Position numbers and translations under genes: made by a program. The notes below the pieces were generated by a model. The model was not told the origin of the DNA. It searched no databases and saw nothing but the letters and a program-made list of their open reading frames with translations. From assembly GCF_001194135.2 (NCBI RefSeq), contig NC_068995.1, positions 57,357,591 to 57,421,590 on the forward strand: a stretch of DNA of 64,000 bases. Reading direction: 5' to 3'. Shown here in pieces: positions 3,330 through 36,954 of this stretch (the first letter of the stretch is position 1; the number at the start of each line of letters is the position of its first letter). Origin of the DNA: Octopus bimaculoides. Taxonomy: Eukaryota.

Positions 3330-3525
3330 AGGGGGCTGGCGGAATCCTTAGCACACTGGGTAAAATACACAGCTGTGTTTCATCTGCCTTAACGTTCTGA
3401 GTTCATATTCTATCAAGGTCAACTTTGCTTTTCATCCTTTGAGGGTCAATAAATTAGTACGATATAGTCAACTAGTCCCTTCCCCAAAATTTCAAGCCTT
3501 GTGCCTATAGTGGAAAGGATTATTG
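3330..3525 (+). mobile_element. SINE family B (tRNA head, central TTTCATCCTTT..GGGTC.ATAA domain, (ATT)n tail)
   Basis: gctggcggaatccttagcac...gttctgagttcatattc...ggtcaactttgcttttcatcctttgagggtcaataaatt. The central domain resembles the Meta/MESC SINE domain from memory. Confidence 0.85.
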
Positions 3526-4099: not shown

Positions 4100-4266
4100 A
4101 AGTATTATTTTGCCTATTTGACATTGCCTTTTTTTTTTTGTTTTTTGCATATTCTCTTTATGTTCCATCATGTGTTGTCCTGATTTTTTGCTTTATCCAT
4201 ATTTTGCTCACCATTCAGCCTTTCTCATCTTCAGTCTAACTTAGTGTTGTGTCCCCTACTCCACAG

Positions 4267-4344
4267 GGCTGGACAAATCCACTGGTGGGATGCCTAGGAC
4301 TGCCCTAAAGGACCAGGGTGAACTTTCATTTTATAGTAGCTCAG
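4267..4344 (+). CDS. Candidate cassette exon, copy 1 of a duplicated pair; phase 1 to 1, xLDKSTGGMPRTALKDQGELSFYSSS(G)
   Basis: Branch-like CTAAC at 4236, acceptor tcccctactccacag, 78 nt, donor CAG|gttagt. Only phase 1 is stop-free. Paralogous to 13039-13131. Confidence 0.55.
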
Positions 4345-4456
4345 GTTAGTGGCCAACGATTTCTAATCCCACTTCTCACTGTTTCCCACCCAATTCGTAG
4401 TACGTTCTTACTACATTGGTTGCTTAACAGCTGCACAGTTTATATATATATGTATA

Positions 4457-4506
<50 letters not shown>

Positions 4507-5219
4507 CTTTTTTTTTTAATGTTTGATCTAGGTTTTTTTTTACATATCTACATGCAAAAACACATGCACTTATAAAATTATATACATATAAATGTGTGTG
4601 TGTGTGTGTATACACACACACACATGTACATACAAACAGATTTTGTTCAACTGCGACTGTTCTCAACTGAATTCAACATGCCTGCGAATTTACTTTCATA
4701 CTATTACAAATATTTATATATTGTGCTTATAAATACTTGCATGTATCCCAATGTACATGCGTCACACACACACAAACGCACACATACAATGCAAACATTG
4801 AACATTTCAGAAAAAAGAAAGAATAATGTTGGTTGTAAGCTTTGCTTTGTTTGTGTGACTTTATATCTGTTTTATGTTTGTTCTGTTTGTTTTTTTTTCA
4901 TTTTTTTTTTTTGTGCGTGTGTGTTTTTATTTTTCATTTTACTGTTGATTGCCTTTTTTTTGTTTCTTTTGCTTCAGAGTTTTATGATTACCTTTATTAT
5001 TGCTATTGTTGTTGTTGTTTCTCAATCCTGTCTCTCCTGTAAAGCATGTAATCTAAACTGAAGAATCAATATGAAGTCTGGAGGACGTCGAGCAGGGAAG
5101 GGAGGGCTGGGAGTGGGAGCAGAAGACGGTTTAACGTTTTTTGTTTTTTTTTGCTTTTTGTCTTTTTTTTTGTTCCGGTTCTGTTTGACTTTCGATGATG
5201 GACAGATGTACGTTTTCAG

Positions 5220-5309
5220 ATATATTTGAAGGCAGATCCTCTTTGCTGTTGTCTTCACTCTTTATACGCAACAAAATGCCCGAGACCAAACTTGAAATAA
5301 TGCAGATGT
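5220..5309 (+). CDS. Candidate exon, (D)[29 protein letters not shown]
   Basis: Acceptor gttttcag and an open phase-1 frame; the donor (gtgtct or gtgtgt) is weak. Confidence 0.2.
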
Positions 5310-5410
5310 GTGTCTTTCTCAGTCATATGTGCTCTATATGTTTGAGATGTGTGCGTGTGCATGTGCGTGTGTGAGTGCATATGTATATATATGTATGTAT
5401 GTATACATGC

Positions 5411-5442
<32 letters not shown>

Positions 5443-5455
5443 ACATGCATATATT

Positions 5456-5498
<43 letters not shown>

Positions 5499-5529
5499 AT
5501 GAAAATATACATGTGTACATATATATATA

Positions 5530-5586
<57 letters not shown>

Positions 5587-5880
5587 TGGACCACATCCTA
5601 AATAAATACCATCCAGCCTATATGTGAAGACTTGTTCTCCAAATGCTACAAACACTGGTGCTGCTGTTGCTGCAGCTACTACTACTACTACTACTACTAC
5701 TACACAATCAAATCTGCTGAAACCCACTTGTGGTAGTTGTATCTGCCTCTCTCTTTTCCTCATTTCCATCCCACCCTCTCCTAACTTCTGCAGAAAACAC
5801 CTTACCTCTTACCCATCAATAGCTTTTTCCACCTTGAGGACTCTCTCTCTCTCTCTTCGTTATCCGTGTTTTTCCTACAG

Positions 5881-5960
5881 GCATCAATCTACCAAAGTTC
5901 AAGCTGTGCACTGACCACATCAACTTCAAAACAGTGGGACTGGACAGGGTTTGGGCTTGA
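5881..5960 (+). CDS. Candidate terminal exon, (G)INLPKFKLCTDHINFKTVGLDRVWA* in phase 1; protein not identified
   Basis: Strong acceptor ctcttcgttatccgtgtttttcctacag, non-repetitive sequence, then T-rich UTR-like DNA. The frame is ambiguous: phase 0 is also open and phase 2 stops after 10 codons. Confidence 0.35.
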
Positions 5961-6738
5961 AGCATTGGGACCTCCTCAAAAACGAAGAAGAAAAATACTT
6001 TTATCACACATTTTTTTGCTTTTTACCAATTTTTGTATTTCAGACATATATAGATATTTATTCCTGAAGGTGTGTTTTTTTAGAAATCTGAGTGAATTTG
6101 GGTTTTTTTTTCTTACCTTGTTGTTGCTTCTCATATCCGTACATGTATTATTTAATCTGTGTGTGCTGATGTAATTTGTATATATATTTTATATCTATTT
6201 ATATATCCTGCCATTTTAATCCTCTCCTGTTTTATTTATTTGTTTGTCGGGTTGTTTTTGTTTTTTTTTTTTAATGGTTATATGGTCACCTGCAAAAGTT
6301 AATTAGCGAGGAGCATTATTGCCAATCTGTTGTAGTTCCTTCTTCTTTTACCTGTCTATTGTGTCATGACTGGATCACATGTCTTTCGTTGCATTATCAT
6401 CTACCATCATCTACAAACACTTGCACCAAGCAGTATCATGTTAATACTAACCCAAACAATTTACTGCCCCCTCCCCCAAGCAATACATCTTTGCTACATT
6501 TTTTTTTTCAGTCCTTATTTGATCATTAGCCATTAGTGGTGTGGTGTGTATTCATACTTAATTTCTCTGATACAATCTCTATGATCTAATCAGATATTCC
6601 GAGAATTTCTATATCAAATTTTTACCTTTAATTCGAAAGACATCTTTTCTCATCTAAAGGTTAAAATAAAGGAATGGAATTCTGAAATAAGATGCGAAAC
6701 TTAATGAAAATTATATTTATACTGACATTCAATGTTCA

Positions 6739-6773
<35 letters not shown>

Positions 6774-6999
6774 NNNNNNNNNNNNNNNNNNNNNNNNNNN
6801 NNNNNNNNNNNNNNNNNNNNNNNNNNNNNNNNNNNNNNNNNNNNNNNNNNNNNNNNNNNNNNNNNNNNNNNNNNNNNNNNNNNNNNNNNNNNNNNNNNNN
6901 NNNNNNNNNNNNNNNNNNNNNNNNNNNNNNNNNNNNNNNNNNNNNNNNNNNNNNNNNNNNNNNNNNNNNNNNNNNNNNNNNNNNNNNNNNNNNNNNNNN

Positions 7000-7215
7000 T
7001 ATATATATAGGAAGAATTCACAAAAAAACAAACGATGAAGACAGGTGGTGTAGAAAACAAACAGATGTATTAGTTTAATGCTTGGGAAGTGAAAAAGTCT
7101 TTTAACATTTCGAGCCTACGCTCTTCCACAGAAAGGAACACAAAAAGAAACAAGGAGAGAAAAAAAAAAGAATGTGTAGTGGCTAGTGATCTATCATGGC
7201 CAATGCCGGACAGAA
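7000..7215 (-). mobile_element. Penelope-like element terminal fragment with hammerhead-like motif
   Basis: The minus strand reads CTGTGGAAGAGCGTAGGCTCGAAATGTTAAAAGAC...ACTAATACATCTGTTTGTT; homologous to 21935-22070. Confidence 0.5.
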
Positions 7216-7227
7216 GGGTCATACAGG

Positions 7228-7542
7228 AGAACTAAGCTGCTAAGCTATGGAGACGTAAACAAGCCAGCACTGGTGATCAAGCAATGGTGGGATAACAAGA
7301 AACACACAGACGCATTCACATACACACACACTTCGTGCCACAATGAACAACGGACATTAAATGAGGAGGATACACACAGGCATACATACACACATACATA
7401 CATATACACAGACAACTGTCTTCTACAAAGCAATGGTCAGCTCAGGGCTATAGTAGAAGACACTTGCCCAAGGTGCTGCACAGTGGGACTGAACCTGAAG
7501 CCATGTGGCTGCAAGGCAAGCTTCTTAACCACGCAGCCATGC
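7228..7542 (-). mobile_element. SINE family A (CORE-like)
   Basis: tagtagaagacacttgcccaaggtg...gactgaacc...gcagccatgc. Confidence 0.85.
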
Positions 7543-8754
7543 TGAAAAGGCGGAATGGTAAGGGCAAGCCACATAGACGAGCCGTGTCCTCTCCATCTCT
7601 TCCTGCCACATATCCTGCAGCATTGTCGATGTTCGAATTGATTCAGAGTGTGTGTGTTACTGGGTTCAGTGGAGTGGCCACCTAATATTTTAGTGTTTTG
7701 TCATCTTTGGTAATTAATGGTGGGACCTTAATGAATTAGCTGGAAGATATGTTATTGAACGTCTTAGAGTGACACTTCTCTTATATACACAAGTGTATAC
7801 ATATATATGTGTATATTTACATATGTATATTTGTATATGTGTATGTATATATATATATATATATATTTTTATTTATACATATATACACACACACGTATAC
7901 TCAGATCTTTGTTTATATGTATGTGTGTGTGTGTGTGTGTATATAAAGTATATGTTTATTTATATGTGTGTATATATATACCTATATATATATATATATC
8001 AACAGAACAAAATCAATATAATTAAATTTATTATTCATAGATTTCAAGTTATTAAATAGTATTTTGGACATTAATTGTAAATAGATAAATTCAAAATGAT
8101 AATCGTATGAGTTTACTGTTGTGCTTTTCTTTTGGTTGGGCTTGTGTCATTGTTGTTACTGTTGTTGGTGTTTTTTTTTAATTCTAAATATTTTAGACCA
8201 ATGTCTCTGGAATTAGGGGTTGTTCTGAATTGTTTTGGTGTGTGAAGTTACACATACACACACACTATCTCTCTCTCTCTCTTTCTCTCTCCTTTGCACC
8301 CCCCCCTACACACACAAACAATGAATCTTTTAATTCAATAAACAAGTGGTTCTCCTTTATTGACACAATAATTGAGAATGTATTGACAGAGTTGGGACAT
8401 AAATGGAGCAAGCATTAATCTATACAACTTCTATAATTACAATCTATGCATTTCATTCTCCTTTTCCCCCTACCTCACTACTCATAACTCCCACTTCACC
8501 TCCCTTCTGTGTGTGTGTGTGCGCACGTGTGTGTGTATTGGTTAGTGCCTGTCAATGAGCTGATTTCAGTTTGTAATTATAGACATAAAACCTAGATTAA
8601 TCACACTTGAAGAAAGAGTTGTCCAGGCTAAAATTTTCATTCTCTACTTGTAGAACTTATATTGCTGATGACATTGATGATGATGATAATAGGCCTTTCT
8701 GCTATAGAGATTTTGAGGAAGGGGGTTGGTTGCTTACATCAACTGTGATGCTCA

Positions 8755-8898
8755 ACCAGTTATTTAATATATTGATCCCAAAGGGATGAATGGCAAAGTT
8801 GACCTCAGTGGAATTTGAACTCAGAATGTAAAAAGGCAGACAAAATACCACTAAGCATTTTGTCCAGTCGCCTAATCAATCTGCCAGTTCACCACCTC
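8755..8898 (-). mobile_element. SINE family B
   Basis: gggatgaatggcaaagttgacctcagtggaatttgaactcagaatg...ctgccagttcaccacc. Confidence 0.85.
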
Positions 8899-8920
8899 AA
8901 TAATAATAATAATAATAATA

Positions 8921-9128
8921 ATCCTTTCTACTATAGGCACAAGTCCTGAAATTTTGGGGGAAGGGACGAGTCGTTTAGATCAACCCCAGTATGCAACTCG
9001 TACTTAATTTATTAACCCCAAAAGGATGAAAGGCAAAGCTGACCTCGGTGGCATGTGAACCCTGAATGTAAAGATGGACAAAATGCCACCAAGCATTTTG
9101 CCCAACGTGCTAACAATTCTGCCAGCTT
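8921..9128 (-). mobile_element. SINE family B, near full length
   Basis: atcctttctactataggcacaag...ggatgaaaggcaaagctgacctc...tgctaacaattctgccagct. Confidence 0.85.
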
Positions 9129-9169
9129 TGTTGCTTTGATCTAGTGACTCATTAATCGCTGCTGTTGAT

Positions 9170-9380
9170 TGGGTTGTTTTATTTGCCCTTGGAAGAACAA
9201 CAAGGCAGAGCTGACCTCAGCAGGATTCAAACTCAGAATGCAAAAAGGTAATAACTAAAAACTACATGGTATTTTTATTGAATTGAGCCCCAATATATGA
9301 CTGGTACTCATTGTTTTGATCCTAAAAGAGTTGGATGAAAAGCAAAGACTAAAGCTTACCAGAGTGAGGTTTGAACTTAG
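9170..9380 (-). mobile_element. SINE family B fragments
   Basis: ggcagagctgacctcagcaggattcaaactcagaatg and actggtactcatt...ggatgaaaagcaaag. Confidence 0.6.
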
Positions 9381-9469
9381 AGAAAGAGAGAGATGGAAGT
9401 AAATATAATAAAAAGCATTTAGTCTCGTTGTGTGCCATTCCTGTCCCATCAGCATCCCTAAAAATGATT

Positions 9470-9630
9470 AGAGGAGACATCTTTGGTATTAGGAAGGGCA
9501 TCCAGCTGTGGAAGAGGTCAAAAGTGGACACTGGAGATTGATGCAGCCCCCTTCTTCTTTGGATCCTCTCAAACCATCAAACACTTACCAACATGGAACT
9601 GGATATTAAATGATGTTAACAAAGGTTATG
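9470..9630 (+). mobile_element. SINE family C 3' part
   Basis: ttaggaagggcatccagctgt...tcaaaccatcaaacac...attaaatgatg. Confidence 0.75.
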
Positions 9631-10063
9631 ATGAGTTTACTGCATTAAAAAATTTAGAGAGAAGTTCCCTGGACTGAACCACTCATACCACTGGTATTTA
9701 TTGGCCCCTGGAGGACTGAAAGGTGAAGTCAAGTTTTATATGATACGAAACCCTCCACCACCATAGGGAATAGTCAGTGAGGTCCTTCTTTGTAGATAGA
9801 TACATTAATGTATTTAAGCATCGGCGTGTATCTGCACACATCCTTTTATGTGGTTATGTGTGTGATGGAAGTGGCTGGGGTCCTTAGAAGGACAACATTC
9901 CTCTATTTCTTGGTTCTGTGGTGAAGAGAGATGCTTCATAACAGCTAATTCCCCCCCTACCTCCCCAATCCTCACTTCACACACCTTGGCATACATGCCC
10001 CTTGTTCCTGAAACACATTTCAATCATCGTTATGTTTGCATCTCTCTCTCTCTCTCTCTCTCC

Positions 10064-10100
<37 letters not shown>

Positions 10101-10583
10101 CAAAAATAAGAGGAATGACCAGCAAAAGTGGACTCCCATATGCTAGAAATAGATGCCGAATCATCTAACCACGAAGAAATATGTTCTCAGTAAAAAATTA
10201 GCGACACAACAGACTGTAAAAGAGCAAGACAAATGAAAAAAATACTAAAAAAAGCATATTTACCGAGATGCAATTCGAAATTCCCGCCACTTACATAGGG
10301 AAATAGCGATGAACAGTTTTCTATAGACTATATTGGATACACGATGTTCGTTTGGTATGTTGATTCTCTGTTTACTGCTATTTTTCTTGACCATATTATA
10401 CTGACGAGTAGAGGTTGTATAATACTACAATAACTACAAAATCATGATCTATAATTTAATCTGTTTTTAAGGGGTTGGCTTTGAGAGTTGCATTTCCTCG
10501 CGTTCGGTAAAAATGTACTTTTTATGGTAGTCTGACCTTAGAGTCCCTCATAGCATGAGGCATTATCGTATAGTAATGCCCTA

Positions 10584-10634
<51 letters not shown>

Positions 10635-11260
10635 TACACACACATACCTTTTTATATCTTTATATAAATGTATGGAGGTGCAATGTATGCACACATACAC
10701 ATGCAGTTGTTTCCATAAGAAGACAAAATACTAAGACGCACATACTCCATTGCTTCACTGTATTTCTTGAAGCCTGAAGCCTGTCCACCAATATTCCTTC
10801 TCCATTTATTGTGCTGGCCATTTCTACTCTGTGACTTGCCCTTTCTGCTAGAAGCAAAAATGGCTTTCCTTATATTTAGCAATCTACTGGCTTCCACCCA
10901 AGAGAAGTGCCTCTCCTCCTCCTCCTGCTTTTTCTTTCAGCAATCCACCCATACCATCTCCACCTTTAGTAACATTCTCAGTGACAGCTGTAGTTTTCTT
11001 TCAACAAACAGCTATTGCATTGCTTTGCTGCAGTTGAGTAGCTTTCAAAATGAGCATTAGTTCATCTTTTTAGATGTTCCACTTGTGTCTGTTTTACTTC
11101 TGCAAGGTTGTATGTTATGGTTTTATGTTTAATGTTTGCAGTTCTAATGTGTAAGTAAAATGGAAATAGCTGCATGTGTGTGTGTGTGGTGTATGCATTA
11201 AAAAGTGTGCTTACATGTATGTGTATGGTGTATATATATATATATATGTGTGTGTATATA

Positions 11261-11302
<42 letters not shown>

Positions 11303-11322
11303 CATATGTATGTGCATGTTTA

Positions 11323-11388
<66 letters not shown>

Positions 11389-11519
11389 CTCAAACGGACA
11401 CATGTAGATACATTCACACATATATGTATGTTTATGCAAATGCTAAAGTTCTATAGATTACTTATGTTTTGGCACATGTTTTATTGCAAGACTTGATATT
11501 AACTCTGCTAGAAACTTAC

Positions 11520-11556
<37 letters not shown>

Positions 11557-12566
11557 ATATGGACTTGATAGCCGTACACCCAGGAGAGAGCTTACCTGAG
11601 TTCTATTTGATTCGTTGAATCCCTATTCCTGTTATATATAAATATAAAGATACATACACACATACTTGCATACACAAGGGGAGGGGTGTTTTATAAATAT
11701 TTGTATTTAGTTGTATGAATATATATGTATATGTGTGTGTGTATATATATATGTATATATATATATGCTAAACCATTGTGTGTGTGTTTGTAGTGAAAAT
11801 AGCTCAATTTTGTTGATTCTTCAATTTTTGAATCTTTAGATATCACTTTGAGGATAATGGATTCTTGTCTGAAAACATTTGCCATAATCTTTTCTTTTTA
11901 GATTCTTGCTTTGAATAATTCTTAGACGAATAATAATGCGAACCTATATTATTAGAACCAACTACATTGGCAATAAAGGCTTCACTCTCCTTTCCAGTAT
12001 TCGCTTGCAAAACTTTGTTCCACTTCTTTTTTACATAAAGCTGATACTGAGATCATTTAGAAATTAATAATAATAATAATATTTACAACAGAAGCAGCAA
12101 CATCAGCAGCATGAACACCACCGGCACCACTCCCACCATCACTATCAGCATTGATTAATCAGTTGTTTCCACTGTGTTTGTTTGTTTGTTTCTTCGTTTA
12201 TCTAAGTTTTTTTTTCTTTTCTTCTCTTCTTTTTTTCTTTCTTTTGTGATCTCCAATTGACTCTCTGAATAACTGGCTGTTTATGCTGACAGTGGGTCTT
12301 GAAGTGCTTGTCATCCTGTGTTAAGTGTGTTCAAATGTGTGTGTGTGTGTATGTGTAGTCTTGTGAGTGTTTGTGTGTATGTCATGTTTCCTCTATGTAG
12401 GTCCTGTTCTTATCTTTTCTTATTATGATGTATATATAATAGTTATTTAATAGTATTTAGTCTGAAGAATCCAAGATCATTTTGGCTCAACTTATTTTAG
12501 ACTACAGAAAGAGTTTTCGCCATAAAATGAGTATTATTATTTGTTATGCTTTTGTTATCATTACTG

Positions 12567-12598
<32 letters not shown>

Positions 12599-13038
12599 CA
12601 TTTTTTATTACCTTTTCATTTTACCTTCTTACCTTTTTATTTTACTTTATTACTATAATTATTATTATTATTATTATTTGCTATCATTATTTATTTAATT
12701 ATTTATTATCATTATTGTTGATGTTTACAATCATTTTCTTCAATAAAAACTGTAGAAACACTACTGATAAGATCTGAAGATAAATATACATATATACATA
12801 TATATACATATATATATATATANNNNNNNNNNNNNNNNNNNNNNNNNNNNNNNNNNNNNNNNNNNNNNNNNNNNNNNNNNNNNNNNNNNNNNNNNNNNTA
12901 TACTAATTGTTAAAGTTAAGTCTCTGTTAATTGCTGTTTGCCATTATTTTCCCATTTTAATTGAGAGGTTTAGTCATATTATTTTAGTGTCTTTAGTTTT
13001 TCCATTGTCCAATTGATGTTATGTCCCCTACTCCACAG

Positions 13039-13131
13039 GGTTGGACAATTCCACTGGCGAGGTGCTTGGGACTACCATTATGGAGCATCAGCTTGGGGGT
13101 GACATTTCATTTAATACTAATAGCCTTGCAG
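13039..13131 (+). CDS. Candidate cassette exon, copy 2; phase 1 to 1, xLDNSTGEVLGTTIMEHQLGGDISFNTNSLA(G)
   Basis: Same acceptor tcccctactccacag, 93 nt, donor CAG|gttagt. Open in phase 1 (also phase 0). 13018-13057 matches 4246-4285 at 37 of 40 nt. Confidence 0.55.
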
Positions 13132-13561
13132 GTTAGTAATTATTTATGATCCCAATTTCATCATTTTATCTCTGGTTCTTTTAAGGACGTTCTAGTTTCA
13201 TGTCATTATTATTATTATTATTAAAATTCTACAATTTATATATATACATACGTATATATATATATATATATATATATAATTTCTTTGTTTTCTATAATTT
13301 TTAAACATTGTTTTTATTTTTTTTATTTTTTTACACGTTCTATTTTCTGCAAATATTTACATATGTACATGTGTGTGTGTGTGTGTATATATATGTATAT
13401 ATACATATACATATATGCATACATGTACACATATATATATATACAAATACATATATGCATACATACATGTATACACATATATATATATGCACACATGTTT
13501 GTTTGTGTGTGTATATATATATATGTATATGTATATGTATATATATCTATATCTGTATATA

Positions 13562-30804: not shown

Positions 30805-31067
30805 GCAAAGTTACAGGGACATAAACAAACCAATACCAGTTGCCAAGTGGTGGTGGTAGTGGTGGTGACAAACATACATAAAGACACACACATGCACATG
30901 CGTATATACACATACACAATGGGCTTCCACACAGTTTCCACCTGCCAAATTCACTCACAAGGCATTGATTGGCTCAGGGTTATAATGGAAGATGCCAGCC
31001 TAAGGTGGCATGCTGTGGGACTGAACCTGAAACCACTTGGTTGGCAAGCAAACTACAAAGCCATACC
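30805..31067 (-). mobile_element. SINE family A, degenerate
   Basis: gttacagggacataaac...caaattcactcacaaggc...gtgggactgaacctgaaacc. Confidence 0.8.
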
Positions 31068-32779: not shown

Positions 32780-33146
32780 TTTATCTTTATTTTGTTTCAG
32801 TCATTTGACTGTGGCCATACTGGGGCACCAATCTGAAGAATTTTAGTTGGTCAAATTACCCCCAGTACTTATTTCTTTCTGTTTTTGTTGTTGCTGTGTA
32901 AGCCTGGTATTTATTCTATTAGTCTCTTTTGCCAAACCACTAAGTTACAGAGTTGTAAACACATCAGCTCCGATTGTCAAGTGCGATGCACTTCTTTCAG
33001 TTTCTGTCTACCAAATCCATTCACAAGGTTTTGTTCAGGCCAAGAGTATAGTAGAAGATACTTGCCCAAGTTGTCATGCAGTGGGACTGAACCTGGAGCC
33101 ATGTGATTGAGAAGAAAACTTCTTACCACACAGCCATGCCTGTGCC
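32780..33146 (-). mobile_element. SINE family A, near full length
   Basis: tgtttcagtcatttgactgtggccat...gatacttgcccaag...cacagccatgcc. Confidence 0.9.
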
Positions 33147-33889: not shown

Positions 33890-34010
33890 CATTCCACCTG
33901 GCTTTAGTTGACATAGGGCCATAATAGAAGACACTTGCCCAAGGTGGCACACAGTGAGACTGAACCCGAAGCCATGTGAGTGGAAAACAAGCTTCTCAAA
34001 TAAAGCCACT
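33890..34010 (-). mobile_element. SINE family A, 5' part
   Basis: agaagacacttgcccaaggtggcacacagtgagactgaacccg. Confidence 0.85.
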
Positions 34011-35100: not shown

Positions 35101-36954
35101 TAGCTTTACGTATTTTGTATTAACAATAATACCCGCCAATCCAAGATTTTTTTTGTTTCTTTTTGTTGTTGTTTTTTTTTAATATCTAGAATTATTAATA
35201 TCTTGCTCCTTTGACCTGTTTTCCTTATGATTCCCATAAAAATATATTAAAAAAGAAAAGTAAACTCTGTAGCTGTATGTAATAAGGCTTGTAAATTATT
35301 GCTTCATGTCTGCGAACAAGCTGCTGGGATAACGAAGAAGGAAATCAAATATCCATCCCTATTAAGAGATTGCTTTGGTTGTTGGTGTTAACTGCTTTGC
35401 GGCAGATCTGTACTTTCCCCTGCTGCCCCCCACCCCGTTGCCATGTTCCTAAGGAGAATGCTTGCGTTGTATTAACGTCATCTATTTCTAGAGTCATATT
35501 CGAACTGGTTGATACTATTCCCACTGCATTCAAAGAATTTAATAACTTGCTCTCACATGTTTAGATTTAGGTAAACAGGTGTTTTGGAGTTTCGATAACA
35601 CATGGATTTTCTTTTTGGTACAAACCTAGACACACACATGCACACACACTCTGGGCTTGTGACCTCACATATTAACCACATGGCATAAATATATCCACAA
35701 TTTGAAGAAAGTGCTGAATATTTGTAAAGAATTATTTCTGGTATTAATGTCATTTTCAGTTGACTTTTCCTTGTTTTTCGTTAATGCTTTTTGTAATAAT
35801 TACTCATTTTCTCTTCGCAATGCAATTAGATATATTAATTACTGTAATTATTATACATGTTGCTATGTGGTTAAATAAAAGTGAATCTGACATAAAAGGA
35901 GATCAAATTTAAAATTGCATTCAAATCAAAGTTTCTCGTTTTGTTTTTTTAGGGGTTTTTTCTTGTTTTTTTTTTTTTTTACTCTCCTTCCAAACTATTA
36001 AACTTTATTAATGTAACCTATTTTCTTCAAGAGTCTGCTCCAATTTGGTGGAGTGTGCAGGTGGAGTAGGGGAAGAAATAAAAAAAAAATTACTATTAGA
36101 TTTTATTTCTTTACTCCAAGTTGTTGCATTGAAATCTGTTAACTTTGTTAAACTGATAAACCTGACTCTTAAACTGTTAATTTATGGCAAGAATCTTTGC
36201 AGAATCACTTGTTTATTGTTTTTGATTATCTATTTCCGTCAGTGCTCACATCATAAATCTGTTTAGCATGCATTTTCTTTATTAGTNNNNNNNNNNNNNN
36301 NNNNNNNNNNNNNNNNNNNNNNNNNNNNNNNNNNNNNNNNNNNNNNNNNNNNNNNNNNNNNNNNNNNNNNNNNNNNNNNNNNNNNNNNNNNNNNNNNNNN
36401 NNNNNNNNNNNNNNNNNNNNNNNNNNNNNNNNNNNNNNNNNNNNNNNNNNNNNNNNNNNNNNNNNNNNNNNNNNNNNNNNNNNNNNNNATATATACTGTA
36501 TATAAGTATGCACACATAGTCACACATGCATGTGCTTGTATGCAAATAGTTATTCTTAGCTGATTCAGTTACAAGATCTAAACTCTGAGGAGATATTCAA
36601 CATGTATCATGTAGAATCACATGCAATAAATTTGGGTTTCTGGTTTCAAAGAATTCTTTTAGAAGTTTTTTTGGTTAATGCTTCCTTTCTTTTTTTTTTT
36701 TTTGCTGTTTGTTCTCTTATGAGCATATTTTTAATGAGATGAAATAGAGAACTTCTTAATAATTGTTATCTAACATTGGACGAGTGGTGTAAAGAAAGCT
36801 ATGAAAAGAAGTCAGAATTGGTTCAAGAAGGAAATATTATGAATTCAACCCTAGTCTTAGTCTAAGGATATTCTTCAACAAAAATTCAAGTATGGAATTA
36901 AACGTTGTTTTACCTTGAGGTTAGACCTGATGAAATGCATGCCATTAGTGTTCT

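Follow-up and report, generated by a model that had tools for sequence, protein, structure and literature searches.

Two short, similar segments lie about 8.8 kb apart in a 64,000-nucleotide stretch of the Octopus bimaculoides genome (assembly GCF_001194135.2, contig NC_068995.1, positions 57,357,591 to 57,421,590 of the forward strand; hereafter the window, in whose numbering all positions are given), and the locus raises the question of which gene they belong to, whether both are used as exons and, if so, whether they are used together or in place of one another. In a first-pass annotation, made from the letters alone, they had been read as a diverged alternative-exon pair that arose by exon duplication in a gene left without a name. 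The analysis reported here indicates that the two segments are very probably paralogous cassette exons of the single-copy O. bimaculoides Onecut gene, which encodes an HNF6/ONECUT-class transcription factor with a CUT domain and a homeodomain. They are termed exon A and exon B below.

Host gene and structure of the two exons

The host gene was found by a protein search, for which the six frames of both copies were used, with repeat-derived open reading frames (ORFs) as control, and which resulted in a match to isoform X4 of O. bimaculoides Onecut, annotated in RefSeq as "one cut domain family member 2 / HNF6" with at least 14 predicted isoforms. The peptides of exons A and B occur verbatim in XP_052829331.1 and in sibling RefSeq Onecut isoforms; the gene can thus be named, both exons being part of the public annotation already. 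By tblastn, residues of X4 were mapped to 4266–4346 and 13032–13133 of the window, which places the segments as exons of this gene. No real match to either peptide in a protein other than Onecut was found among 5.8 billion clusters and 1.84 billion representatives. Across the linker, X4 reads ...FQRMSALRLA-GLDKSTGGMPRTALKDQGELSFYSSS-GLDNSTGEVLGTTIMEHQLGGDISFNTNSLA-ACKRKEQDQQ.... Pfam domains were recognized at residues 217–292 (CUT, E 3e-34) and 372–425 (Homeodomain, E 2e-11), as expected of an ONECUT-class protein, and the crystallized HNF6 DNA-binding region (PDB 2D5V) was aligned to X4 residues 216–295 and 351–433 at E 7e-79. In this alignment, the A+B insert is located precisely at the SALRLA/ACKRKE junction, whose two sides adjoin each other in HNF6 alpha.

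No further exon of the RefSeq Onecut isoforms was located in the 64-kb window by tblastn. Upstream of window base 1 lie the exon for the CUT domain and two further linker cassettes (E1 and E2), and the homeodomain exon lies >50 kb downstream or within a gap; the orthologous gene of Argonauta spans approximately 499 kb. Because only exons A and B of the host gene lie in the window, none of its ORFs was protein-like by listing or by ranking of amino-acid composition, and Pfam analysis of the packed plus-strand ORFs returned nothing. A non-coding reading, briefly favoured from the A/B divergence and these ORF and Pfam blanks, was overturned by the X4 match. The word-index protein search missed a 58-residue query of the joined peptides, which is an exact database substring over 57/58 residues, and negatives for short queries are unreliable there.

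Exon A comprises 78 nt or 26 codons (4267–4344, plus strand) and encodes (G/W)LDKSTGGMPRTALKDQGELSFYSSS; its paralogue, exon B, comprises 93 nt or 31 codons (13039–13131, plus strand) and encodes (G/W)LDNSTGEVLGTTIMEHQLGGDISFNTNSLA. Since both are phase 1-1, each can be included or skipped without a change of frame. Both are open in phase 1, as the first-pass annotation had stated; this frame, which starts at the third base of the exon, is the only one open in the two copies. The splice sites, too, were found intact in both: the acceptor ...TGTCCCCTACTCCACAG/GG follows a pyrimidine-rich stretch, and the donor is CAG/GTTAGT. Acceptor block A, GTTGTGTCCCCTACTCCACAG (4246–4266, plus strand), which ends in the used AG, is identical at 20/21 positions to block B, GTTATGTCCCCTACTCCACAG (13018–13038, plus strand), the pair forming a conserved 3' splice-site block. 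The GTTAGT donors were located at 4345–4350 and 13132–13137 (both plus strand), the end of exon A at 4344 being fixed by a junction in transcript L002 (see below). In frame, each donor reads GGT TAG, which in the case of exon B gives the C-terminus ...NSLAG, followed by the stop, of isoform X10. With CAG/GTTAGT at both 4342–4350 and 13129–13137, a retained intron would add one extra glycine and then a stop after either exon.

A re-count of 4246–4285 against 13018–13057 again gave 37/40 matches. The blastn alignment of 4245–4338 with 13017–13119 spans 103 columns, of which 74.8% are identical (E 1.2e-15), with two copies only in the window, and the local alignment score of 186 compares with 36 ± 4.5 for shuffles. 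The gaps between A and B are 9, 3 and 3 nt long, all multiples of three. Weaker similarity had been said to continue for about 130 nt. The robust part of the similarity stops at the donor; what remains downstream is weak and consists mostly of (TA)n microsatellite, most of the apparent downstream-intron homology vanishing after simple-repeat masking. An origin by exon duplication is borne out by the E value, the common strand, the shared phase 1-1 and the adjacent exon order in isoforms X1 and X4; exon B would have arisen by tandem duplication of a unit in which exon A was flanked by approximately 40 nt of the preceding intron and by the donor.

Linker isoforms and a proposed function

Isoforms X1–X6 and X8–X14, all RefSeq Gnomon gene models, were recovered by cluster look-up. 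Their CUT–homeodomain linker is composed of four phase 1-1 cassettes, namely E1 (VGFSGYNQTDQGETTTHCEDTVSLL) and E2 (AKQCESVDLPSGVSYRPSVSPYI), both upstream of the window, and exons A and B. The linker consists of E2+A+B in X1, E1+E2+B in X2, E1+E2+A in X3, A+B in X4, E2+B in X5, E1+E2 in X6 and E2 in X8. All four cassettes are present in X9, followed by a short terminal exon and no homeodomain, and in X10, followed by read-through of the B donor (GGT TAG); X11 carries E1+E2 and then a different terminal exon, and X12 carries E1+E2+A and then the same short terminal exon as X9. Isoforms X13 and X14 are without the CUT domain and have E2+A+B (X13 also E1) before the homeodomain.

Accordingly, exon A without B is annotated in X3 and X12, exon B without A in X2 and X5, both in X1, X4, X9, X10, X13 and X14, and neither in X6, X8 and X11. 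Exon B is also contained in an independent 2015 model (A0A0L8GFN9), in which A is likewise joined to B. As all four A/B combinations are annotated, the exons behave, at the level of gene models, as independent cassettes and not as mutually exclusive ones. That A and B are combinatorial, independently includable cassettes is thus supported by the gene models and, for exon A, also by decapodiform transcripts.

In the 2015 model, exon B is followed by an alternative 3' exon at 40099–40136 (plus strand), with the acceptor TTTTTTCAG/TT, the reading …NSLA/VGTCWLGHVLVS and an in-frame TGA; a strong internal donor-like TTG/GTGAGT at 40127/40128 would turn it into a 29-nt frame-shifting cassette. Isoforms X14 and X13 (P0136 and P0137) begin with a 41-residue leader (MERFHRAGRNE…VKYM), joined directly to E2 in X14 or to E1+E2 in X13, and the ONECUT2 model of Sepia pharaonis begins with this leader too.

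Together with the unrelated upstream cassettes E1 and E2, exons A and B build a modular linker, to which A adds 26 residues, B 31 and both 57. In an AlphaFold2 model (46-sequence alignment), the CUT and homeodomain helices were folded, while residues 294–368 showed a predicted local distance difference test score (pLDDT) <50 and no secondary structure; the A/B insert is hence predicted to be a disordered linker. In crystals of ONECUT2 the linker is invisible, and separation of the two domains changes the affinity from 7 nM to about 1.4 μM, nanomolar affinity requiring their covalent tethering (PMC11490551). Earlier rat work, as summarized in a study on the little skate, described isoform-specific promoter responsiveness (bioRxiv 10.1101/2025.07.30.667746). 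By analogy, we infer that linker length may affect DNA binding in the octopus as well, in which case A and B would tune the length and composition of the tether and hence the half-site spacings and affinities that are reached, a difference of the kind reported for rat HNF6 alpha and beta. Products without the homeodomain would result where A or B is followed by read-through or by an alternative 3' exon. For exon A, constraint would bear on the RNA as well as on the peptide, and exon B would act as a spacer.

Divergence, age and alternative readings

Onecut of Argonauta hians contains E2 plus an exon A that is identical to that of octopus at 24/25 amino acids. Logan transcript contigs (SRR8281681 and SRR8281683; transcripts L001 and L002) fall into one cluster together with Sepia pharaonis ONECUT2 and run from E2 through A into the homeodomain. 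These decapodiform transcripts read ...CCCCTACATAT/GGCTGGACAAATCC... at the acceptor and ...AGCTCAG/CATGCAAGCGG... at the donor, with the junction AGCTCAG/CATGCAAG in L002, so that exon A has exactly the same splice boundaries in the decapodiform as in octopus (acceptor 4267, donor 4344). At the DNA level, the decapodiform exon A is identical to that of octopus at 75/78 positions, with one synonymous and two replacement differences. The lineages of octopus and cuttlefish have been separated by a few hundred million years; over that split, 75/78 is a strikingly high identity, and exon A is, on this comparison, ancient.

The same three sites were used to date the duplication. Exon B carries the decapodiform base at 3/3 of them, and the replacement changes Thr>Ala and Ile>Leu of octopus exon A (two of the three sites) are also found in Argonauta. 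A copy made after those changes would need three specific reversions, at a probability of approximately (0.22 × 1/3)^3, or about 4e-4, and from this polarity the duplication is older than the Octopus/Argonauta split.

Identity between A and B is unevenly distributed. It amounts to 14/21 in the intron from −45 to −22, 20/21 from −21 to −1, 17/19 over exon bases 1–19, 39/53 over exon bases 20–72, 11/12 over the last 6 exon and first 6 intron bases, and 1/6 from intron +7 to +12. The splice-signal blocks are thus near-frozen, and the body of exon B has drifted about as far as the proximal intron, yet its frame is open. In the peptides, the CTG/TTG difference at Leu2 is synonymous, as had been noted, but the remaining changes are not conservative in the way that had been claimed: 10/25 residues are identical, mismatches are spread evenly over the codon positions (8/6/8), the ratio of nonsynonymous to synonymous substitution rates (dN/dS) is approximately 1.08, and the divergence is not codon-structured. 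From this pattern we infer that B may have been selected for spliceability, frame and length rather than for its exact sequence, and A constrained in sequence. A resemblance between the 3' end of E2 and the intron sequence that precedes A and B, with CCCCTAC in common, was rejected, with P values of 0.18 and 0.045 and 7% of AG sites doing equally well.

The alternative that survives best, although it is unlikely, is that exon B is a decaying pseudo-exon, spliced as low-level noise and taken up by gene predictors, with A as the only functional copy. It is favoured by several of the points that weigh against two functional, linker-tuning cassettes: a dN/dS near 1 together with flat codon-position usage gives no sign of purifying selection on the B peptide in the A–B comparison, the 10/25 peptide identity is low, the exon body is conserved only about as well as the proximal intron (39/53 vs 14/21), and exon B is backed by computational gene models of O. 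bimaculoides alone (RefSeq Gnomon and the one 2015 model). No exon B orthologue was found in another species among 128 retrieved Onecut proteins or by HMMER against 1.84 billion representatives, the exhaustive search giving one real match, octopus X14. To these points it must be added that the full-length Gnomon combinations are not individually validated, that a functional effect of linker length is an extrapolation from studies on vertebrates, and that both skate isoforms activated the reporter tested (bioRxiv 10.1101/2025.07.30.667746). Decay is countered by the age of the duplication, since which 31 codons have stayed open with all gaps in multiples of three, by the 20/21 acceptor block and perfect donor, and by two independent annotation efforts that join A to B.

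Further relatives of the two exons were sought at greater distance. A 1897-aa protein (P0135) was rejected as a relative, being a bacterial-type repeat protein with summed chance similarity, and no cassette exon was found in cuttlefish-type loci with 10-kb flanks. Homology of exon A with a linker of the gastropod Nucella lapillus (LDTKNGGMPNSA) is not claimed, the score of 40 being borderline against a null that reaches 37 at its 95th percentile and 47 at most. The linker of the N. lapillus protein P0018, RLDTKNGGMPNSA, resembles WLDKSTGGMPRTA of exon A and hints at a pre-cephalopod exon A.

A strict choice of exactly one of the two exons is very unlikely. Mutual exclusivity is a common fate of tandem exon duplicates (PMC6071210), and both acceptors share a sequence box of which a single inverted copy lies downstream; against it stand the six isoforms and the 2015 model containing both exons, the three isoforms containing neither, and an A-to-B join that keeps the frame with lengths differing by 15 nt.

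The shared element is a 13-nt box, TCCCCTACTCCAC, at both acceptors, whose exact reverse complement, GTGGAGTAGGGGA, was located at 36061–36073 (plus strand) in the long intron downstream of B. Three box matches were found in the window vs 0.03 expected from shuffles, two of them being the paralogous acceptor boxes. Duplexes of 36061–36073 are predicted at −32 and −30 kcal/mol; such partners also exist for approximately 9% of the AG sites in the window and for 1.2% of its GC-rich 13-mers. The flank of this candidate is unique in the window and adjoins a partial tandem repeat (GGTGGAGTGTGCA GGTGGAGTAGGGGA). A selector/docking layout has been proposed to arise from tandem exon duplication (PMC6071210), and a shared acceptor box with one downstream inverted copy is like it, which in such a repeat-rich window is a weak lead. 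It is doubtful that a long-range duplex of this kind masks no more than a single 3' splice site at once and so biases the choice between A and B. The near-complete nucleotide conservation of exon A between octopus and cuttlefish, synonymous sites included, may reflect an RNA-level role, for instance in splicing control or as an editing structure, in addition to the peptide.

That the repeat is a transposon or short interspersed nuclear element (SINE) fragment with splice-like motifs is the least credible reading, and the first-pass annotation had likewise judged against it: the window is rich in dispersed repeats and a (TA)n tract follows both copies within about 110 nt, but such tracts occur every 1.7 kb there anyway, the segment has two copies in 64 kb as opposed to at least 7 for the SINE-like family of the window, neither copy has an RNA-gene signature in the form of a tRNA or Rfam match, the peptides are found in RefSeq isoforms of Onecut and in no other protein, and a cuttlefish-like mRNA matches exon A at 96% identity.

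Copies of the SINE-like family (74–85% identity) were located at 7425–7543, 30919–31054, 32985–33142, 33914–33999, 40991–41152, 53116–53222 (minus strand) and 58537–58691. Its motifs (…HLGQVSSTIAL…, …AVGLNLEP…) are presumably those of an abundant octopus SINE, and no tRNA head was detected in it by ARAGORN or Rfam. A second dispersed family, recognized by tblastn (E down to 8e-6) at 533–625 (−), 56921–57010 (−), 8939–9016 (+), 9178–9237 (+) and 3387–3431 (−), is resembled by the terminal exon of isoform X11 (…NQSQYITGTYFIDSQNDEKQKSTPSGFELRT…). The homeodomain-less X11 thus probably ends in an exonized repeat, that exon itself lying outside the window.

Sixteen N runs (10–825 nt), several of them adjoining microsatellites, take up approximately 9% of the window, and simple repeats approximately 8% more, with (TA)n tracts of at least 16 nt about every 1.7 kb. 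Two of the gaps lie in the intron between A and B: one at 6774–6999, 2.4 kb downstream of the exon A donor, and one at 12823–12898, flanked by a TA microsatellite and ending 140 nt upstream of the exon B acceptor. Neither touches an exon or splice site, and the frame argument is therefore unaffected. Owing to these gaps, the 8.8-kb spacing is an estimate only; the order and orientation of A and B are consistent with those RefSeq proteins in which B follows directly on A. A third exon copy is present in no annotated isoform, and assembly gaps could still hide one.

Known linkers and tandem exons

A variable CUT–homeodomain linker is a known theme, and with both exons in RefSeq the octopus locus is not a new kind of system. 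In the rat, the beta isoform of HNF6 is distinguished from the alpha isoform by a 26-residue exon at the CUT–homeodomain junction (PMC11800625). The octopus gene is like rat HNF6 (ONECUT1) in having an optional small exon, a long CUT–homeodomain intron and an insertion at RLA/ACKRKE, and exon A has the same 26 codons; it is unlike it in having four cassettes instead of one, two of them paralogous, together with truncating 3' exons, and the inserts share no detectable similarity. No vertebrate linker scored above the shuffle null against A or B (best 26; null 95th percentile 37). Sequence comparison thus does not point to homology between the octopus exons and the vertebrate HNF6 beta exon, position and 26-codon length alone coinciding. 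In the little skate, Onecut1 (LSOC1X2) carries a developmentally regulated 48-residue spacer exon (bioRxiv 10.1101/2025.07.30.667746), which is likewise a disordered, alternatively spliced CUT–homeodomain spacer, but a single exon of unrelated sequence for which internal duplication is not reported.

Among tandem exon duplicates, such as those of Dscam, adjacent same-phase exons of similar sequence with a similar proximal upstream intron are found as well (PMC6071210). In contrast to Dscam-type clusters, the octopus pair is combinatorial, unequal in length and part of a disordered linker, rather than a set of folded-domain variants. No description of the A/B paralogy was found in the literature searched for Onecut and octopus. 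New, on the sequence comparisons given above, are the assignment of the exons to their gene, the recognition that the two cassettes are paralogues, a lower bound on the age of their duplication, and the contrast of a frozen A with a drifting B.

In the developing brain of the octopus, Onecut marks most neurons (83% of the cells of the paralarval brain; PMC9712504). With four optional cassettes, two of which are paralogous, one gene could yield many variants in tether length, along with versions lacking a single domain. The theme of Onecut linker splicing, known from rat liver and skate retina, is thereby extended to cephalopods, and the natural linker series of 0, 26, 31 and 57 extra residues would be well suited to testing how tether length relates to the site preference of a bipartite transcription factor.

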